A stretch of 61,543 nucleotides of DNA, the filler included, from Choristocarpus tenellus KU-1152 (Eukaryota; Protista; Phaeophyceae), in NCBI GenBank assembly GCA_964200185.2. It is 10 parts of 10 records of this genome, joined end to end, with 100 filler letters (N's around TTAATTAATTAA, not from the genome) between each part and the next. Parts side by side here need not be neighbours in the genome. Positions count along the whole stretch, not along the records: positions 1 to 17,181 come from CAXNAD020000707.1; 9 more parts are not named here. One strand, given 5' to 3'. Within the stretch, counting starts at the first letter, position 1. Each line of letters starts with the position of its first letter. Positions 5,192 to 14,760 of the stretch are shown piece after piece. The position numbers and the translations under genes are program-made. Under the pieces are notes generated by a model, which was not told the origin of the DNA, did not search any database, and saw only the letters and a list, made by a program, of their open reading frames with translations.

Positions 5192-8100
5192 ATGTTTCGC
5201 CTATCGTTGGTGGTGGGCGCCTTTGCCCTACTCTCAACGGTTATGAGCCAAGTCTCAGTGGATATGCAGCCTTGCATTCTTGCTTCAGACGCATTGGTAA
5301 GGGGATATTGGGACACAACAGCTTCCATCTATTCCTCTGCGACCTTGCCTGGTATTTGGTGGTAGTCAAGTTTGAGAGTCTTCGTGTTCTCCAGTGATAT
5401 CTCGATATCCAGCACACTTCCGTATACGTTTGGAGTCACAATGCTTCGTGCAAAACATAGTCGATCTAGATACCATCCAACTAAAACGTCCTCATTACAT
5501 ACCCTCAATAACAGGGTCCCTCGACGGCACCTGTAGGAGATGCATACTTGATCTCGCAGTGGTACAAGGGCTTTTGGTCTGCAGCCCAGGTTTGTGTTAA
5601 GGATTTATGCGGGGTTTGCTATTAAATTACCAAGTATGCGCATGTAAAGCTCCAATATGCTGGCTCATTTTATACCTCTGCTCTGGATCCGTCCTTGCTG
5701 GCATCTACTTCTGATACGATCATCATTGCGTTTCATACGCGCGCAGAACGTGATCGTTGCTCCCACAGGCAACTTGGGCCTTACCAACGCCGACGGTAGT
5801 GGCAAGTGCGATGTGATATACGTGGGTATAGTTCCAACTGAAGCACAGAAGACGGAGCTTCAGGACTATGCTCGTGCTTTCAAGGTTAGCAGGACAATTT
5901 GCAATGATTGCAAGTGTATTCAAGACTCGCAAACAAAGATGTCGATTGATCGAAGTTCCCATTCCCTGGTACCACAACCTAGACTTGATGCGTATAGTTT
6001 AAGTGTCATAACCTGAAATCATGAACAAAACAAGGTTACTTGAGTTTCTCCTTTGAGTGAAGCCATATGTAATTAATCTCTATAATCATCTTAAGTTATG
6101 TGCCACACCCTCTAGACAACATCATATTCTGATATTGCAACCTCTCTTCTACACCCCGCCAGCTCTGGATGCCTAGTTGAGTCCTACAATCCTGTCGGTC
6201 ATAGCTTCAGTGGAAGGACATCACCTCACCTGTTACACCCTCTCCGAGAAAATTTGTGTTCGCAGCCTGTCAACTTCACGCAGGAATTGATTGATGACCC
6301 ATTGATGAATTCAGGTGCGACTGGTATGGTTCGAAAGCTCAGATGCTGCTAACAATCTTGAAGTAAACTTGAGGATGAAAGTCAGTCAGACATTTGCACC
6401 TCCTCTCTGGACACTCGCTGCACCTACTCCTCCAGCGCTGAAGCTTACAAGTAAGTGTGTGATCCATTATTTCTATGACTCCAGGCTCAACGTATCTGGG
6501 GGGGGGGGGGGGGGGGGGGGGTCTTTACCAGGGTGTTCGTTCGGGTCCTGACCAGCAGAAGTGCACTTACATTATCCATCCGACACATGTAATCAAATCA
6601 ACCAAAAATTGTGACAAGGAAAAATGGGCCCCGAATGGACAGCTGCCACCCCCTCCTAGACACTTCGAGCCTCCAGAGAGCCAAATTCTACATGTCCTCT
6701 CATGCTGAACATATTTTGGGTTGTCAATACTAGAGTGGAAAATTGACACAATGAGTGGAGGCTGGGATTAGATTATGTGACACCATTGACCCAATCGACC
6801 TTCCATAGTGATTGGACCTGAAAAGACTCCTAGTTTATTGGCGCTCTGCTCCAATGGAATATTCAATTATAGGTGATGTTTGATTTGATAGATACTGGTC
6901 TGTCAGATTTGATCGACTGATAATTTTGCGGTCTTATCATTGAGAGAAGTCATACATGAAGCAGATAACATGTATGAACTAAAAAAATCGACAAATATTG
7001 TTAAAGCTATCTACTGGAGGTTCAAGTTGGAGAATTCCCCCTAACACGACTCCACCCCTCGATGTGTTGACGTTAGATATGCCGTTAACCACTATCGTTC
7101 CAACTGTTATCTTTGCAGCGGCGGGGAACGCAATTTCTTCGGTGATTGCAGATGGTATGATGACAAATCCTCAGAAGAACAACATGTTCACTCGTCCTCT
7201 ACACCAGTACGAATCCACGTTCGACAATGGAACAGCCAATATCCTTGGTTCGTAAGTACATATCTCCAAACCCAAACAGTGTTTCTTCAACACAACAGTG
7301 TGAACTTCAACTGGTGCCAAGCTAGATTTTCATGTCTATGAACGTTGAAGAATAGTTGACTTTGAGCAGAATGGAAACATTCCGACTATCCAGTGCCAAT
7401 GCTTGTAACTCTATCAATTTCAGTTACACAGTTGACTTTGGTTTGAACACACTATTTGTGATATGCTCATTTGCTCAGGTATGCGGATATGACCGGAACG
7501 TTTTTGGTGAGTGTTGATAACTTTCCTTCAGCAGCAGTAGTGGAGTGGATTGGAACAGATGGGCTGGAAGAACTCTACATCTTCTTCACCATCGCGTGGT
7601 TTGACATGGGCTCCTGGGCATGGGGACATTTTGCGGCGGACTGGGCGACCAAAGGAATCTTCCAGGCACGTAAAAGGCTAGTCTTTGGTAACTCTGGGCG
7701 GTGAGGTGAACAGAAAGTATTTTTTGTTCATGGGGTAATATAAGTGTTTGTCTTAGGAGAATGGTAAATGAGTTTGTACTATTCCATATATCATTGAAAT
7801 CACAGGAGGAGGGACTGAGGAGTCAGCATGTGGTGTGCTCAGTGTTGTTGACGATACATCTCTGCAATCCCGTCCTTTGTTCAAACTCGAAACACTGCGA
7901 ATATAGGGTGAAAGGCGCTTCTACCTTGGCCCTGTGGTGGATGACCTTTTTCTGACAACTGAGCAGTTTGTGTACGATGGCGCAGATAATAAGGGTCCGG
8001 TAAGCTTGCCAGCTGGGTTATCTCATAATTTGCTTTGAAACAAGATATCCAAAAAGAAAAATATGACAAAGGCTCTCTTGGTTGGAACTTCTTGTGCTGA

Positions 8101-11100
8101 ACTTTCAGAGAACTTCGCTGGACGAGTTTTTAATGCTATCACTAGTATTGTCGAAATCGAACCATTCACTTCTTTATATCTCTCTTTGACTGACGTATGC
8201 ATGGTCGAACTGCTTCAGGAGGTGCGGCTGACTGGAGCAGAGCTGAATACCTTTCAGAGTTTCCAGAACACACTCAACTCTCTATATGGTTCTGATATTA
8301 TTGTGGAGTTTGCCTACAATGGAAACGGGGTCCTCGAGAAGGTTAGTGCGTACTACAAACTCAACTCAGATGTATTGTATTTAAGAGGGCGACTTTCAAT
8401 GATCCAGTAATACTTGCAATATTAACTGCGAGAAAAGAAGTCGCTATCACAAACGTGCCTTTCGTCTAAAAGTTCCTTCGAGATTTGTTCTAGGAAGCTC
8501 TACATGTGCAGTGCGTAAGCCAGGTTCTTTCTCGTTTTCAGTCTCACTGCGTAAGGTTCCAAATGCCGAAAACAGGTCATCTCCCCATTAGCACTGAGCT
8601 TCGAAAATGCTGATGCTGGACTCCTGCCCAAGGGTCAAAAGATTGAAGGGAATGGTAAGGACAAGAGAAGTAATTAGTGGTCTAAGTGGTCTTGGAGGGT
8701 GTAAGGAGAGGAACGTTTCTTTTATATTTATCCATAATAATTTCCAATGCACCAGAAGTGCATTCCATTGACATCATGTGGGACTACGTTATTGTGAGAA
8801 CATCCTCCATGTTAGGTTGAAGGTGCCGTTTTTATTGAACTTGACCCAACACAGCAATTTGGAGGAGTGACTATCTTGTACAAATATGGATATAGTGTGT
8901 TTCAAAATTTCGGAAGAGGTGTGGGGTACATGTAGTGTGGACTAGTTGTTCCAATTCCCTTCGAGAAACCTTCAAGTGCGGTGACCCTCTCTGTATAACA
9001 CAGGTATTCCCCCTGTTCTTGATACCACCTGGTTGTCGAGGGCTGTACCTGGGATGGCAACCGAGTTTGCTTCTGGACTCTGGATTGCTAATGATGATCT
9101 TCTGAGAGAAACATTGACAACAATGAGGAATGAGTTCTACTGGCAGTCCCATACCTTGACCCACCTTTCAAGAGACAACCTTGGCACATCAGACTGCACC
9201 ATCGAGGACGAGGGTAAGGTTTTGAAATGGTGCAAGATACAACATATCCTTCAGGGAACACAAGAGTATTCTAGGGAATAGATTTGTGCATGCAGACCCA
9301 ATTCAGCTTGGTTCACCCAGAATATTTTTTTCCGGGAAATTGTTTTCCGGTGTAACAAGAGTCAGTGGATACTTTAGCACCATTTAACCTGAGTGCTTGT
9401 CCCTTTGCATTGCCAGGCCCAACTATCCCCTCTGTTTGGGAGGAAATTGTCTCAAAAGCAAACATATTGATTAATCACCTTTTTTTCTAATCTGGGAAAG
9501 TCGGTTTCACAATATAGACGTGATGGGGTCGTAAGTCGGGTAGTGATGGGGAAAGTGACATGACCATGCTTCACTGAAGTCTGTTGCTATCCAAAATTCC
9601 TCTTTGCTCCTTCCTTTGTCTATGCTGAAGTTTCTTTCCGTCGATCGCATTGCTATTCAGGCAACATCCAGTTCGCCAAGGCAATGAACTGGTACTTCAC
9701 GAACGACAACTTCAACTGGTATTCTATGGTATCTCCTGGTATCACTGGTCTCTTCAACGAGTTCTGCCTAGCGTGAGTCACCATGAGAAATCTTCTGCAT
9801 CTCTCCTTTGAGAGACTACATGTTGAGTCCAGTCCAGCACTCCATACATTGCAAGCAATGAACTTGCTAATCACTGATTTGTTCCATCATTTCAAAGCAA
9901 CAGTGAACACAATTGTTTCTTAAGAAAACCTTTGGGCTGGTACATTGAGGTTGTCTTAGCTCTTGTAGTATATTTTCCCTCCTCAATATTCGACCTTTGT
10001 AAAAAATGTGCTTCGTTGAAGTACCTTGACATGATGCGGCGACCTTTGTTATCCTTAAATGTAATCTTATTTACTCTAGTAATACAATATATTGAGAAAA
10101 GGGTTATAACATTTCTAGGCAGTTTCTTTCATTATCTCAGCATTAGTTCCTTCTTTCAATTGTCCCTGCGCTTGCTCTAAACTTTGAGTTTACAAAATTA
10201 ACTCTTTAGGAGCGGCGCTGCTCAGCTGATGACCTGCTACCCTGGTGACAACACCTTCATTGGTGTTGGAAGCGCCACTCTTGTTAATGAGAACAATCGT
10301 TTCCACCCTCTGACGACAACTGTTGCTACCAATGGTGAGTCTGGTGTCAAGTGTCTTTGCTTAGGTGGAGCATTACCCACCTCTTTTTTGCCATTCCTGA
10401 CTTCATGACAACTGATATGTTGCTTAGTTGTTACCGTAACCCTGTTTATTTTCTAAGGAGTCAAGAAACAAGTTGATCTTTGTTTGCTGCTATATCGGAT
10501 TAAGGACAGAATGGTTGATTTGTTCACATGGTTCCAGGGGTGTTTCTTGAACATCAACTCATTGTCGGTCTCGACAATTTTTTTTTTATGAAAGTCTTAA
10601 AACGATCATACTGTGTAGGATCGCCTAGAATTCTTCTTCCACGAAAGTGTTAATTGACTCTACGTTCGAAAATTTGGGTGCGTGTGTCAGGTTACGCTGG
10701 AGTTACCATCGCCCCACGGTTTGCTACCTTTGTCTACTTCAACTGTGTCACAGCCGATGTGAGTGAATATTTTTCTTCACCCTCTGCTGTGCTCAGTTAA
10801 GACCATGGAGGAATAGTCAGTGTGTCACTGAAGTATTATAGTGATCGCCCTTAGCTGGTTCAAAGTATCTTAGAGGGTATAGTCATGTCCATTTGGGGAC
10901 CAAAACCCAAGGTTGCGATTTTGATGTAATTTTGGCTACGTGTTTGTTAGGAAGTGTTAACATCCTTGTTCCAGACACATCATAACATACACATTTTACC
11001 TACTCCAGAACGTTTCGGAGTAGGTAAAATGTCATAAAAAGCCCGTGGGAAGCCAAGCCCACAGCGGACAAACAGGGCAAAACCTGTACCCTCTAAGATT

Positions 11101-14100
11101 CTTTCACTCAGCTATTGACAAGTCATTTGAGAAAAATGTGTAACAATGATAAGTATTTTTTGAGTGTTCATATAGACGTAGAAGTGATTTGTATTCAGCG
11201 ACTCTTACAATGCTGGTGGTTGTAATTATTGTACTTGGTGTACAAAAGCCTTTCAAGTGGTGAGAAGTGGGTAGCCTCTTGCCTTACAAGAATCGCATAT
11301 GATAGGCACCTTGCCTGACATGTTTCAGTCTCCTCTAACCGTTGTTTGATGCAGTGTCTTATCAAGGAGAACGAGTTTATCAGGCGCACTGTGTGTGGAT
11401 GCTCCAACCTTGACCCAACCGGAGATAAGGGGGTAAGTTGGGCTACGTTGGGTAAATGCTATGTATAAAAAACTATGGTATCTGCTAATATATGTTTTCA
11501 GATGTTTTCCATTCTCCACGTATTTGAATCCTACGTATCACATATCAACTGTGTTTTAGAGACCAGTCCACGAAAAGTTTAGTACCCCTAGTATTATATA
11601 TAGTTTTGTCGTACTATCAACGTCTACGCATTATATTGGGAGTCGTACGATTATACATGCATACCTGCGTGTCTTGTCTTACGTCCTTGTTCATTAACTC
11701 TCTACACTGTTCCTGAGTTTGTTTCTTTATTTTATGCCTGGCACTGCTGTTGCTGTTCTTAACCAGTAGCAAATCAACCCTGGACTTGTGACTTTAATCT
11801 AATCACTGTCCTTCACCAATCCTGTAATTTTATGTCGGACGCACTTTGTTCACAGACTTGCAGTCTATGCGGCGACGACATCCAGTCCTTCGGAAGTCTG
11901 GCCAACCTCATCAATTGGGAAAAGGAAGCGACTACGAGGCAGATTCTAAGCGGTTTCCGCGACAAGTACATGTTCCATCAGGTGTGTGTCTGTGTGTGAA
12001 TATATGGACTCTCCTTAACTCGGAACCCATAGGCACTAGGCATGTGGTTTGTACCCAGTAGATACCAGAGATGAAGCACAAGCAATGTTGTCGTTTCTTG
12101 ATGTTCCTATTTTGGATCCTGGCTTTGGATTGTTGATTTAAGAGCGTGTGGGGGGAAGATTAGTTCATGTAGTCTAGTTGAGGACTTGGATACAGGCACA
12201 TTTGCAGTACACTTGAATTTTTCACATTCACCTTTCACTATTTCACCCTTTTGGTGCAAGTTCTCTGAAACATATGCAACGCCATTTTGTTTTTGTTCTA
12301 TTGTTTGATTATCCCTACAGGCCAATGTGATCCCCACAACTGACATAGATGGAACCACCAGCAAGTCACTACTGGAGTTTTGGATGGAGGAGATTATGTT
12401 GGAGCTCACCTCTTTCATCAGCTTCCCGATCAAGGTCTTGAAGTACCTGAATTGATGCAAAACGCTTGGTTGAATCTTATGAATGGAGTGTAAGATGATT
12501 AATTGCTCATACAAAGTATCATCATGAGAGAAGTGTAAATTGCACTGGTATTGACTTGTCCAGTTCCCTCGGGTAGATCGAACTGGACAAGTCAATGCCT
12601 AGACATTTGCAAGGTGCATGTTATCGACCTTACTTAATCTTTATACACCACTTTAATGCCATTTACCCTTCGTGACGAACTATATTCACCCCTCTATCGC
12701 TAGAGGGTACACTGTATCGGTTCTACCAGCATGTATTCTCTATACCCTTGTTTTGCGGTTGTGCCTTGCCCTCGAGTACCTTCCCATCTTGTTTATTGCT
12801 ATCGACTTGTCAATCAGACTCTCAAGTTCGATCACTTGTGCGATAACTTCAACCTCCACGAGGCTTTGGATGGTGCAGAACCTCTCCTCAGGGCAAATAA
12901 GAACACCGCAGGTAAAATGTAGCCTCTTGTACAACCCCTTTTTTGCTCTCCGTCCTTGGTGAGATTCGATTTGAGTATATCAAGTCGAAAGCTCTCTGGA
13001 GAATTGATGAAAATACTTCAACGAGTGCAGTCTTTGTAGTCGGTCTCTTTTTTGTTTGTGCTGTACTTCGCATTATTCTCTGTCAACTGTAATTGATTTA
13101 CATTGTCTCATGAAATGAAATGAAGCAATCTTCTTGTTTAAAATGTCTTGGACAGCATGCTAAAAACTCAGTAGGGACACCTGTGCTGAACAACTGTGTG
13201 TTTGATGAATAATCTTTCTCCTTGCCTTAATGACACAAATTGTATTCGAAGGTGTGGTCACTAGCATTGAGCTGGCTTCAGCTTCGGGTACCACCGGATA
13301 TATCCCTGTCACCGTTCCCAGCACTGTGTCGGTGAGAAGTGCTGTTGCGGGGACAACACGGATTTAGAAGTGCGCTATCTACACAAAATTTGGATTGAGC
13401 TTTCCTTTTCCTTTCTTTTGACAGTTAGAGGTAGCGCCTTCCAAGTAGAGATGTACTCTCTCGACTATTGTGGTAAGAGAATACTCCGGAGTAGTTTGTT
13501 TTTTATGATTTTTGAAGGAGTACTACCCATTATTGAGTGTGCCAAATCGCGGAAGAGGAGGAGATACAGATATTTCCACCTTGTTGGAGGAAGCTAACCT
13601 GAAGAAACTACTTGTTGAGAGGGCTTACAGTCTCCCCTCTTCCGCCCAAAGTCTAGAACTACTTAGATTTTGGAAAAAAGGTTGGGTTCTCCTTGAATAC
13701 CCACCTGATTCAATTTTGTTGTTTCACTTTCTCTTTTAGCTTTGAGCTGGCTGTGGTGTTATAATGGTTCTACTGCCATTTTCTGTAACCTCTCGATGCA
13801 TACTTTGTATCAATATATCGATCATATTGCGTACAATTGCTCCCCCAAGTATAATGAACTTCAACGAGCTGATTTGGGGATATAATTCTGTAGTAAACCT
13901 CTGACCTACCAAGGAGGTAGTCAGCTATCTCCGCGGTAGCTCAGAGGTTTGCTAAAGGTTCAAATATATCATAATCGTCATGTCAGCACTATATTTCCCA
14001 TTTCCTCCATTTTTTCTTCATTTTTAGTTTAAGGATATATTGACTGGTGGCCAAAGGAACCACACACTACTTCTCATACGCCGGGAACATACCTACTGAG

Positions 14101-14760
14101 TACTTCGAAGTATGATGCTTGGACTTAGAACCATGCCACGTACTTCTTTCTATATTACTTGAACTTAGAAATAAGTCAAACTAATAGTTGCACTGCATCC
14201 ATTTCTGCCTTGATCAATTTTGTTGAGTTCAGTTATCCCACCGCTCATTGCTCCTCCCTCAAATCTAGCGCCGGACCCGCCTCGGTGTCGTTCGGCAATG
14301 AAACTTGCCACTCGTAACCCGGCGTTTTTTCGTCGTATAGTGACAGAGAGGACTTTGGATAATCGAAATTCGATGTTTGTAGAAAGAAGGCCAGGCTCGA
14401 CACAGTTCGGACCCCAAAAATGCAGCAGGTTCCTTAACTATGAGAGCCATGAAGTACCTCCCAGACTCAGATACAAGATAATTAAAATTATCTTGTTGTC
14501 ACGATCAGGGTGCATGGGTGAGGTCCTAACAAAGCCATGCGTTTGCTTCTTTGAAGTATTATTTAAATGGGCCCCAAATGGACAGCCCCCCCCCCCCCAT
14601 TTACTTTGAGCCAACACTTCCATTATTTCACCTTTCTTTGCAGGTGGATGTCTCCAGTGTTGCTGGTGGAAGAACTGAGACGTACGGCACTGACAAGACA
14701 TATTATCTTGCCACTGCTGCAAGTGCAATCACTACACCCCGTTCAGCCCCAGGAGTATGA
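5192..14760 (+). CDS. agd3: Secreted Agd3-like polysaccharide de-N-acetylase (carbohydrate esterase family CE18), 19 exons, ~730 aa
   Basis: Exons 5192-5296, 5515-5589, 5747-5884, 6315-6450, 7119-7251, 7479-7665, 7907-7999, 8219-8341, 8576-8654, 9004-9213, 9661-9772, 10210-10334, 10691-10758, 11355-11432, 11856-11981, 12321-12434, 12818-12911, 13252-13331 and 14644-14760 join phase-compatibly into one 2193-nt ORF. Signal peptide MFRLSLVVGAFALLSTVMS. Motifs WATKGIFQGERRFYLGPVVDDLFL, FAYNGNG, FYWQSHTLTH, SMVSPGITGLFN, GDN, PRFATFVYFNC, YMFHQAN and ETYGTD occur in the order known from fungal Agd3. The last exon could alternatively splice on at GTATGA. Confidence 0.88.
6484..6671. mobile_element. 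Sola-like MITE family B (188 bp), intronic
   Basis: Termini GGCTCAACGTATCT...AGACACTTCGAGCC, with a perfect 4-bp TSD TCCA at 6480-6483 and 6672-6675. Confidence 0.8.
10857..11109. mobile_element. Sola-like MITE family A (253 bp), intronic
   Basis: Termini GGTTCAAAGTATCTTAGAGGGTA...TACCCTCTAAGATTCTTTCACTC; TSD AGCT on both sides; homologous to copies at 39081, 56937, 58311 and 59925. Confidence 0.85.
13891..13954. ncRNA. Candidate intronic pre-miRNA-like hairpin
   Basis: Two 30-nt arms (TAGTAAACCTCTGACCTACCAAGGAGGTAG / CTATCTCCGCGGTAGCTCAGAGGTTTGCTA) give 25 Watson-Crick pairs plus 2 G:U pairs around a 4-nt loop. No expression evidence. Confidence 0.3.
14565..14612. mobile_element. Right end of Sola-like MITE family B
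   Basis: GCCCCAAATGGACAG-Cn-ATTTACTTTGAGCC; left end not clearly recognisable. Confidence 0.55.

Follow-up and report, generated by a model that had tools for sequence, protein, structure and literature searches.

A 19-exon Agd3-type (CE18) deacetylase gene of the brown alga Choristocarpus tenellus, its brown-algal family and its relatives on phaeovirus-like contigs

The brown-algal matrix is described as consisting of alginate, fucose-containing sulfated polysaccharides, cellulose, phlorotannins and proteins, and a gene for an apparently secreted enzyme resembling the fungal amino-sugar polymer deacetylase Agd3 raises the question of what such an enzyme would act upon in these algae. A gene of this kind had been noticed, in an earlier note made from the sequence alone, on a 61,543-nucleotide stretch of DNA (hereafter the window) joined from ten records of the Choristocarpus tenellus KU-1152 assembly GCA_964200185.2; it occupies positions 5192–14760 of the plus strand, within the contig CAXNAD020000707.1 (C707 of the assembly searched here, with 164 Mb in 27,310 contigs). 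The host is indeed an alginate-making alga, as the note had it: C. tenellus is a brown alga of the Discosporangiales, the earliest-branching brown-algal order. The analysis identified the locus as a new member of a family already labelled in databases, so its interest lies at the level of the family, and the questions of membership, nativeness, distribution and substrate are taken up in that order.

The assignment of the window gene to the CE18 family, and to its Agd3 type as claimed earlier, is made with very high confidence. Agd3 of Aspergillus fumigatus is the founding member of CE18 and carries a CBM87 domain (PDB 6NWZ; PMC7229062). The window protein was searched exon by exon, while two relatives served as its proxies in the full-length comparisons with Pfam, PDB and AlphaFold: the closest C. 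tenellus paralogue (P0001, 73% identical to the window model) and a Discosporangium orthologue (P0075, 58% identical, aligning with model residues 1–728). Five window exons matched the Pfam family Agd3_CE (PF25115) collinearly, at profile positions 20–65, 125–157, 213–238, 229–256 and 267–299, with 13–24 bits each, all below the 27.6-bit cut-off when taken singly and summing to about 88 bits. The paralogue reached 169 bits with the same profile (E 1.9e-49), full-length brown-algal homologues and orthologues giving 138–170 bits, and it aligned to the Agd3 structure over 530 residues (50–580, E 3.2e-33). An AlphaFold2 model of residues 1–740 of the orthologue, made with a 53-sequence alignment, was of high quality (predicted local distance difference test, pLDDT, 92; predicted template modelling score, pTM, 0.91) and had Agd3 6NWZ as its best PDB match (Foldseek E 1e-41, template modelling scores 0.74/0.81). 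In VIA-align the two superimposed with Z 42.9 and a root mean square deviation of 2.7 Å over 612/665 residues, and, since model residues 24–725 fell on Agd3 142–794, the CBM87-like, esterase and C-terminal beta domains were all covered; thus both profile and fold led to Agd3, and no better non-CE18 fold was seen. Single-exon phmmer searches against PDB returned chance matches only (ribonuclease inhibitor, designed Tako8 propeller proteins). Membership in CE4 was considered and rejected: no CE4 (NodB/Polysacc_deac_1) Pfam match was found among the exons or the full-length homologues, the likeness of the orthologue model to CE4 enzymes was limited to Z 11–14 against 42.9 for Agd3, and the long spacing between the catalytic motifs CM1 and CM2 that separates CE18 from CE4 (136 residues) is kept in the window protein.

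All four motifs read in the earlier note were found in the rebuilt model: VVDD (aa 268–271), SHTLTH (405–410), PRFAT (514–518) and YMFHQAN (592–598, split by intron 15 between Q and A). They were aligned locally with fungal Agd3 orthologues, including AN2954 of A. nidulans, which comes from the canonical galactosaminogalactan (GAG) cluster. In CM1, D270/D271 of 'GPVVDDLFL' align with fungal 'IDDMFL' and, via the paralogue P0001, with 6NWZ; in CM2, H406/H410 align within 'SHTLTH', at a CM1–CM2 spacing of 136 residues versus 133 in Agd3; in CM3, R515 of 'APRFAT' aligns with 'PRFAT' or 'PRWAT'; and CM4, with M593 and H595, is identical to the fungal motif. The window model thereby keeps the residues matching Agd3 D377, D378, H510, H514, R613, M666 and H668, each of which is essential in Agd3 (PMC7229062). 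Between CM3 and CM4 the brown-algal and viral-contig proteins (see below) carry about 22 extra residues, four of them cysteines (CxC...CxxC), located at approximately residues 408–437 in P0001 and at aa 542–559 (exons 14–15) in the window protein, where Agd3 6NWZ has a gap. The first ~17 residues are the single strongly hydrophobic segment of the protein by hydropathy and residues 1–20 are the sole low-confidence stretch of the orthologue model, both of which fit a cleaved signal peptide; the secretion claimed earlier is accordingly a prediction from a signal-peptide-like N-terminus.

In an independent reconstruction of the gene model, guided by splice sites, homologues and an unbroken frame with no stop permitted, the 19 exons of 68–210 nt, 18 introns and length of 730 aa were the same as before; the introns measure 157–1312 nt and the coding sequence of 2193 nt is free of internal stops and frameshifts. 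In translation, the exon-sized open stretches of the plus strand have counterparts, 55–85% identical, on at least nine further C. tenellus contigs, the sequence between them being unconserved among the contigs, and exons are richer in GC than introns (50.5%, with 55.7% at third codon positions, versus 41.1%). Besides the orthologue, the model aligned end to end with a Scytosiphon protein (P0079, 50% identity) and similarly with Pylaiella and metagenomic proteins, P0026 also being aligned over its full length, which supports the gene start, the gene end and the N-terminal exons; for exon 1 in particular, the N-terminus of P0026 aligns and an equivalent exon is present on the paralogue contig C969. 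Rejected alternatives included an exon 1 ending at 5351 and joined to 5537, a GT donor at 7670 (no frame-compatible acceptor), several other GC donors that scored well by chance only, and a hidden C-terminal extension beyond 14760.

Seventeen of the 18 introns are GT-AG introns with a good consensus. The donor of intron 6 is GC (CAG/GCACGT, 7666–7667), at a place where five paralogues (C969, L002, L003, L004 and L006) have CAG/GT. The junction 7665/7907 is the sole one for this intron that keeps the frame and is consistent with homology, alternative GT donors breaking the frame, and intron 6 is presumably spliced as a GC-AG intron. The word "intact" used in the earlier note depends on that splicing: the absence of internal stops and the retained catalytic residues speak for it, while the GC donor adds a caveat. 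Since a minority of eukaryotic introns are normally of the GC-AG class, the gene is kept as apparently intact; with the donor taken into account, the window copy is quite probably functional.

It is virtually certain that the gene is a native, old nuclear gene of the alga. Intron 4 contains a ~190-bp interspersed repeat resembling a miniature inverted-repeat transposable element (MITE), for which more than 2800 first-look candidates were obtained genome-wide, the best 39 copies on other contigs being 81–90% identical; intron 18 has another, incomplete copy (~14565–14612), the two sharing arms at 6484–6510 and 14586–14612. Another interspersed repeat of about 370 bp, upstream of the gene at 2020–2392, has at least 674 first-look candidates with 82–86% identity. 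Furthermore, of the 18 introns, at least 13 occupy positions that are common to the homologues of Scytosiphon, Ectocarpus and Pylaiella, the one at aa 60, following exon 2, among them. These two repeats and the common intron positions exclude contamination, confirming the note on this point. The great age proposed there is likewise borne out by the intron positions common to other brown-algal orders and by a ratio of nonsynonymous to synonymous substitution rates (dN/dS) of 0.16, computed over 715 codons in comparison with the C969 paralogue and with dS saturated. The gene is old, duplicated within the Discosporangiales and under purifying selection.

The exon with the HxxxH motif was found on 10 contigs of the C. 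tenellus genome, some pairs of which are possibly haplotigs, making the window gene one of about ten paralogues. The exons of contig C969 match the C. tenellus protein CAM9244706.1 (P0001) at 91–98% in most exon matches, and exons upstream of it on the same contig (L028, 12024–13253) match window exons 1–4 including the signal peptide; as these are missing from the 721-aa product, the NCBI model looks N-terminally truncated. A profile of the HxxxH exon built from five paralogues retrieved 71 proteins among 1.84 billion representatives, the full-length ones being brown-algal. The named relatives came from Discosporangium, Sphacelaria, Ectocarpus, Pylaiella, Scytosiphon, Hapterophycus and Undaria, with homologues in each brown-algal order represented among the named matches, from Discosporangiales to Laminariales, and the genes often stand in tandem. 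Ectocarpales copies (P0091, P0104, P0108, P0054, P0095 and P0099) have N-terminal WSC domains or Extensin_1 matches and the Discosporangiales copies P0001 and P0075 have Pro/Val-rich extensin-like tails, that of P0001 ending in GYYYYDDD repeats; the window protein is without WSC domains and without such a tail, its exon 19 lacking the Pro-rich end, unlike P0001 and P0075. The next relatives after brown algae were fungal Agd3 orthologues (28–30%) and a Physarum protein. No proteins of the sister lineage or of other stramenopiles were among the matches of this search, which was word-based and therefore of limited reach, and no relative was found when bacterial and archaeal genomes were searched for related loci. 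In a quick maximum-likelihood tree, rooted on fungi and Physarum, with support from the Shimodaira-Hasegawa-like approximate likelihood ratio test (SH-aLRT) and bacterial CE18 sequences missing, the window gene was sister to P0001 in a Choristocarpus clade joining Discosporangium (SH-aLRT 95–97). The family is not new to databases: UniProt and Pfam already label Ectocarpus relatives as 'Agd3 deacetylase domain-containing protein', and no paper discussing this domain in brown algae was found.

Intronless CE18 genes were also present on contigs from IMG/VR (UViG_3300031695_000013 and _001136), JGI (Ga0308010_1000518) and ENA scaffolds. For P0085 and on three IMG/VR contigs the CE18 gene has as neighbours VLTF3 (E 6e-52), D5 helicase-primase, A22 resolvase and a CHASE hybrid histidine kinase. 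Of these, the D5 protein shares 62% identity with its counterpart in Feldmannia species virus, 57% with the one in FirrV-1 and 55% with integrated copies from the Pylaiella and Ectocarpus genomes, which identifies the contigs as phaeovirus-like genomes. In addition, an intronless, compact metagenome contig of 65.7 kb (L021), on which no giant-virus hallmark gene was found in the 14 kb read, has a CE18 gene 4 kb from a Spherulin4/GH135-like gene; the latter resembles the Sph3 structures 5C5G and 5D6T (E 3e-5) and algal exons (34–57%). In the quick tree the viral-contig copies and related metagenomic copies formed two groups among intron-bearing algal genes, within a clade excluding the Discosporangiales. 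This nesting favours capture of CE18 by the virus from its host, on branches with SH-aLRT support only. The presence of CE18 on phaeovirus-like contigs, and of a GH135-like gene too on one metagenome contig, suggests that the target polymer belongs to the host. Phaeoviruses and fungi were earlier proposed to have exchanged chitin-synthase genes (PMC5122149), and a virus-mediated link to the fungal CE18 family is conceivable by analogy.

A hint of an amino-sugar exopolysaccharide pathway had been seen in the gene, and partner genes were searched for with mixed results. Exon matches to Spherulin4/GH135 (PF12138) were obtained on 6 contigs of the C. tenellus genome, three of them over the Pfam cut-off, and the GH135-like genes are multi-exon and algal (contigs C16659, C1220, C417, C713, C602, C2768 and C8596). 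The Spherulin4 gene on C1220 begins with MGACSSS, a start that looks more like an N-acylation site than a signal peptide. A GH114 exon on C15787 scored 27.5 bits against a cut-off of 27 and is thus marginal; the presence of GH114 in C. tenellus is independently supported by the published count, in which GH114, the family of Ega3-type alpha-1,4-galactosaminidases, is among the most populated glycoside hydrolase families of brown algae with about five genes per genome, a finding given there without further interpretation and without discussion of CE18 (PMC11468063). The same study gives about 16 GT4 genes, and its supplementary tables contain, in their text, no entries for CE18, GH114, GH135 or CBM87 that could be found. 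The C. tenellus genome thus contains three of the five protein families that make up the GAG cluster of fungi. The hint is accordingly strengthened by the GH135-like, GH114 and viral CE18 genes, and of the partners named in the earlier note the hydrolases were found, while the failure to find a Gtb3/PelF-like synthase and the lack of a gene cluster, given below, do not support a pathway. At the fungal control locus of A. nidulans the full GAG cluster was seen, and the Agd3 locus of Hyaloscypha does not lie in a GAG cluster.

From these features we infer secretion, activity and substrate as follows. The signal peptide would direct the protein to the extracellular matrix, where the N-terminal CBM87-like domain and the (beta/alpha)7 esterase domain would form a long polysaccharide cleft. 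A divalent metal would be held by D271, H406 and H410; with D270, positioned by R515, as the base and H595 as the acid, acetyl groups would be removed from an N-acetyl-hexosamine polymer, rendering it cationic. The likeliest substrate would be a glycan of the alpha-1,4-linked N-acetylgalactosamine (GalNAc) type, similar to GAG or Pel, made by the alga itself and remodelled jointly with the GH114 and GH135-like enzymes that C. tenellus also encodes. The fusion of Ectocarpales paralogues to WSC domains or extensin-like tails provides a matrix context for this mechanism, which in its full form, including the endogenous GalNAc-type substrate, is tentative and somewhat short of an even chance.

Several observations weigh against it. 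Retention of intron 6, whose GC donor might not be spliced, would bring a stop after 12 codons, upstream of every catalytic motif. The algal proteins gave no sequence match to the Pfam models CBM87_Agd3 and Agd3_C (PF25116, PF25117), because of which the cleft residues, and with them specificity, may have diverged from Agd3; the Agd3 cleft residue W292 aligns to a His of the algal protein in the alignment with 6NWZ. The acetyl group removed need not sit on nitrogen, by analogy with the sister family CE4, which includes O-deacetylases. No match to PelF (NCBIfam NF038011) or to 2563 aa of the A. nidulans Gtb3 was obtained in the genome, a weak piece of evidence given that the exon-by-exon search is insensitive to a synthase in a fragmented, intron-rich genome. 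No GH114, GH135 or glycosyltransferase genes were found within 10 kb of CE18 in Ectocarpus, Scytosiphon and Pylaiella, where the loci hold only tandem CE18 copies or unrelated genes. Finally, the literature search yielded no report of a polymer of galactosamine (GalN) or GalNAc from brown-algal walls, and no paper linking CE18, GH135 or a GalN polymer to brown algae.

Other explanations compete with this mechanism. The secreted CE18, GH114 and GH135-like enzymes could serve surface defence by attacking the Pel or GAG of epiphytic bacteria and fungi, CE18 turning GalNAc into GalN and so making stretches cleaved by the Ega3-type GH114 endo-alpha-1,4-galactosaminidases. This would explain why modifying and degrading GAG members are present with no synthase found and no GalN polymer known in brown algae, and expansion into many paralogues and tandem arrays is frequent in defence families; moreover, recombinant Sph3, Ega3 and PelA hydrolase domains disrupt biofilms (PMC10485009, PMC7229062). 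Yet CE18 on phaeovirus-like contigs, and its company with a GH135-like gene on one compact contig, are easier to understand if the substrate is on the host, architecture and introns have been conserved since the base of the brown algae at a dN/dS of 0.16, which looks more like housekeeping than an arms race, and a missing synthase is weak evidence; we regard defence against biofilms, including the proposed division of labour, as unlikely. About equally unlikely is the same fold and chemistry acting on another substrate: O-acetyl groups of fucose-containing sulfated polysaccharides, a glycan of N-acetylglucosamine (GlcNAc) resembling chitin or heparosan, or glycoprotein glycans. Brown-algal fucoidans are both acetylated and sulfated. 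The failure of CBM87_Agd3 and Agd3_C to match the N- and C-terminal domains, the Cys-rich insertion without counterpart in Agd3 and the diverged cleft would fit such a change, as would the second structural relative, the human NDST1 N-deacetylase (Z 21.8), which acts on GlcNAc in a sulfated-polymer pathway, and the fact that CE4 has both N- and O-deacetylases (PMC10967932). Against it, the co-occurring GH114 and GH135-like genes belong with activities characterised only on alpha-1,4-GalN/GalNAc polymers (PMC11468063), and all characterised CE18 members act on alpha-1,4-GalNAc (PMC7229062).

Two further explanations concern the locus rather than the substrate. The window copy may be a recently disabled paralogue, in which a T-to-C change at the intron-6 donor truncates the product before the catalytic motifs while other members remain functional. 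Working GC donors usually have A at +4, and here this position is C; five paralogues have GT instead, no protein matching the window gene was among the Choristocarpus entries returned, and with about ten paralogues redundancy is high. Such a fate is nevertheless improbable, considering that the other 17 introns are canonical, the 2193 nt have no stop or frameshift, the catalytic residues are intact, dN/dS is low, GC-AG introns are normal in a minority, and a base error is possible in a fragmented draft assembly (N50 6.6 kb, PMC11468063). That the contig represents fungal or bacterial contamination or a recent viral insertion is effectively refuted. In its favour are the fungal nature of the nearest relatives that have been characterised and the intronless copies on phaeovirus-like contigs; against it stand 18 spliceosomal introns at positions common to other brown algae, two high-copy interspersed repeats of the C. 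tenellus genome, an identity to fungal proteins of only ~25–30%, the place of the gene in the Choristocarpus and Discosporangium clade and a window free of viral genes.

Returning to the endogenous GalNAc-type glycan, a wider proposition, which we consider doubtful, is that brown algae, beginning with the earliest-branching order, and the phaeoviruses infecting them share a GAG/Pel-like system with a cationic GalN/GalNAc matrix polymer, comprising CE18, GH114, GH135-like enzymes and a putative synthase. If true, this polymer would form a cationic partner to alginate and fucans, which are anionic, and so could serve adhesion or wall assembly, for instance; viruses would manipulate it with modifying enzymes captured from the host. 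A conserved, expanded and constrained CE18 family together with GH114 and GH135-like genes would point either to a missing matrix amino-sugar polymer or to a system against Pel/GAG biofilms on seaweed surfaces. Either answer bears on adhesion, biofouling, seaweed aquaculture and marine carbon chemistry, and existing probes and enzymes allow tests, helped by the viral-contig copies, which are intronless and easy to express. The latter also add a new case of enzymes for the host matrix being carried by giant viruses.

The remainder of the window was poor in recognisable features. The ten longest open reading frames (ORFs) from the flanks and introns had no Pfam match, and no Rfam families or tRNAs were found in the window. 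The repeat at 2020–2392 underlies a 231-aa minus-strand ORF (2003–2698), also without a Pfam match, and a (TAC)17 microsatellite is located at 1833–1883.

Table 1. Exons and repeat of the window gene (window positions) and CE18 genes on phaeovirus-like and metagenome contigs (contig positions).
Feature	Position	Strand	Description
Exon 1	5192–5296	+	Start codon, signal-peptide-like segment (aa 1 to ~20), conserved 'DxQPC' mature start
Exon 2	5515–5589	+	75 nt
Exon 3	5747–5884	+	138 nt; part of the N-terminal CBM87-like domain
Exon 4	6315–6450	+	136 nt
MITE-like interspersed repeat (intron 4)	6482–6677		~190 bp, terminal inverted repeats, poly-G run
Exon 5	7119–7251	+	133 nt
Exon 6	7479–7665	+	187 nt; GC donor at its end (7666–7667)
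Exon 7	7907–7999	+	CM1 'VVDD' at 7934–7945: D270, putative catalytic base; D271, putative metal ligand
Exon 8	8219–8341	+	Matches Agd3_CE profile positions 20–65
Exon 9	8576–8654	+	Paralogue conservation, splice model
Exon 10	9004–9213	+	Longest, 210 nt; CM2 'SHTLTH' at 9147–9164: H406 and H410, putative metal ligands
Exon 11	9661–9772	+	Paralogue conservation, splice model
Exon 12	10210–10334	+	Agd3_CE match, paralogue conservation, splice model
Exon 13	10691–10758	+	Shortest, 68 nt; CM3 'PRFAT' at 10714–10728: R515, predicted to position the catalytic base
Exon 14	11355–11432	+	First half of the Cys-rich insertion (C542, C544)
Exon 15	11856–11981	+	Second half of the Cys-rich insertion (C556, C559); CM4 'YMFHQ' at 11967–11981: M593; H595, putative catalytic acid
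Exon 16	12321–12434	+	Opens with 'AN', completing YMFHQAN
Exon 17	12818–12911	+	Start of the C-terminal beta-rich domain
Exon 18	13252–13331	+	Homologue alignment, splice model
Exon 19	14644–14760	+	Stop codon at 14758–14760
CE18, phaeovirus-like contig L022	9699–12245		Intronless
CE18, phaeovirus-like contig L023	10001–12547		Intronless
CE18, phaeovirus-like contig L024	9944–12235		Intronless
CE18, phaeovirus-like contig L025	9824–12370		Intronless
CE18, phaeovirus-like contig L026	6714–8297		Intronless
CE18 and Spherulin4/GH135-like genes, metagenome contig L021	4804–5709 and 10001–11524		Compact contig

Among known systems, Agd3 is the nearest. Like it, the algal protein, as judged from the orthologue model, has three domains, namely an N-terminal CBM87-like domain, a (beta/alpha)7 esterase domain with a long beta2 insertion and a C-terminal beta domain; it has the four catalytic motifs with all residues proven essential by mutagenesis, and both are secreted, the window protein by prediction. 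Unlike Agd3, with which sequence identity is only ~22–28%, it is without the N-terminal Ser-rich region and has the four-Cys insertion of about 22 residues, and its gene is not clustered with uge3, sph3, ega3 and gtb3, being one of about ten paralogues and not a single cluster gene. The PelA deacetylase of Pseudomonas and PelA-DA of Bacillus cereus are likewise metal-dependent alpha-1,4-GalNAc de-N-acetylases, to which the modelled algal protein appears to be related by a distant fold (PelA 9CGY, Z 12.9), a likeness far weaker than that to Agd3. PelA has no arginine at CM3 and defines a CE family of its own (bioRxiv 10.1101/2024.06.28.601253), whereas the window protein keeps the CE18 arginine. 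The second-best match to the orthologue model was the N-deacetylase of human heparan-sulfate NDST1 (8CCY, 9F6Z), with Z 19.5–21.8 over ~410–460 residues spanning the N-terminal and esterase domains at 12–13% identity, well above CE4 and PelA; NDST1 is also a de-N-acetylase of N-acetylhexosamine acting on a polymer, but it resides in the Golgi membrane, is fused to a sulfotransferase and acts on the GlcNAc of heparosan. The viral-contig copies are 43–47% identical over their full length to the window model or the orthologue and share with them the signal-like start at the N-terminus as well as the Agd3_CE domain (129 bits for the ORF of L024), but have no introns. Closest of all are the brown-algal proteins labelled 'Agd3 deacetylase domain-containing' or 'WSC domain-containing', which include conserved unknown proteins of Ectocarpus siliculosus and unnamed Phaeoexplorer products from the other genera named above and from Choristocarpus itself: they belong to the same family, with 40–73% identity and mostly the same intron positions.

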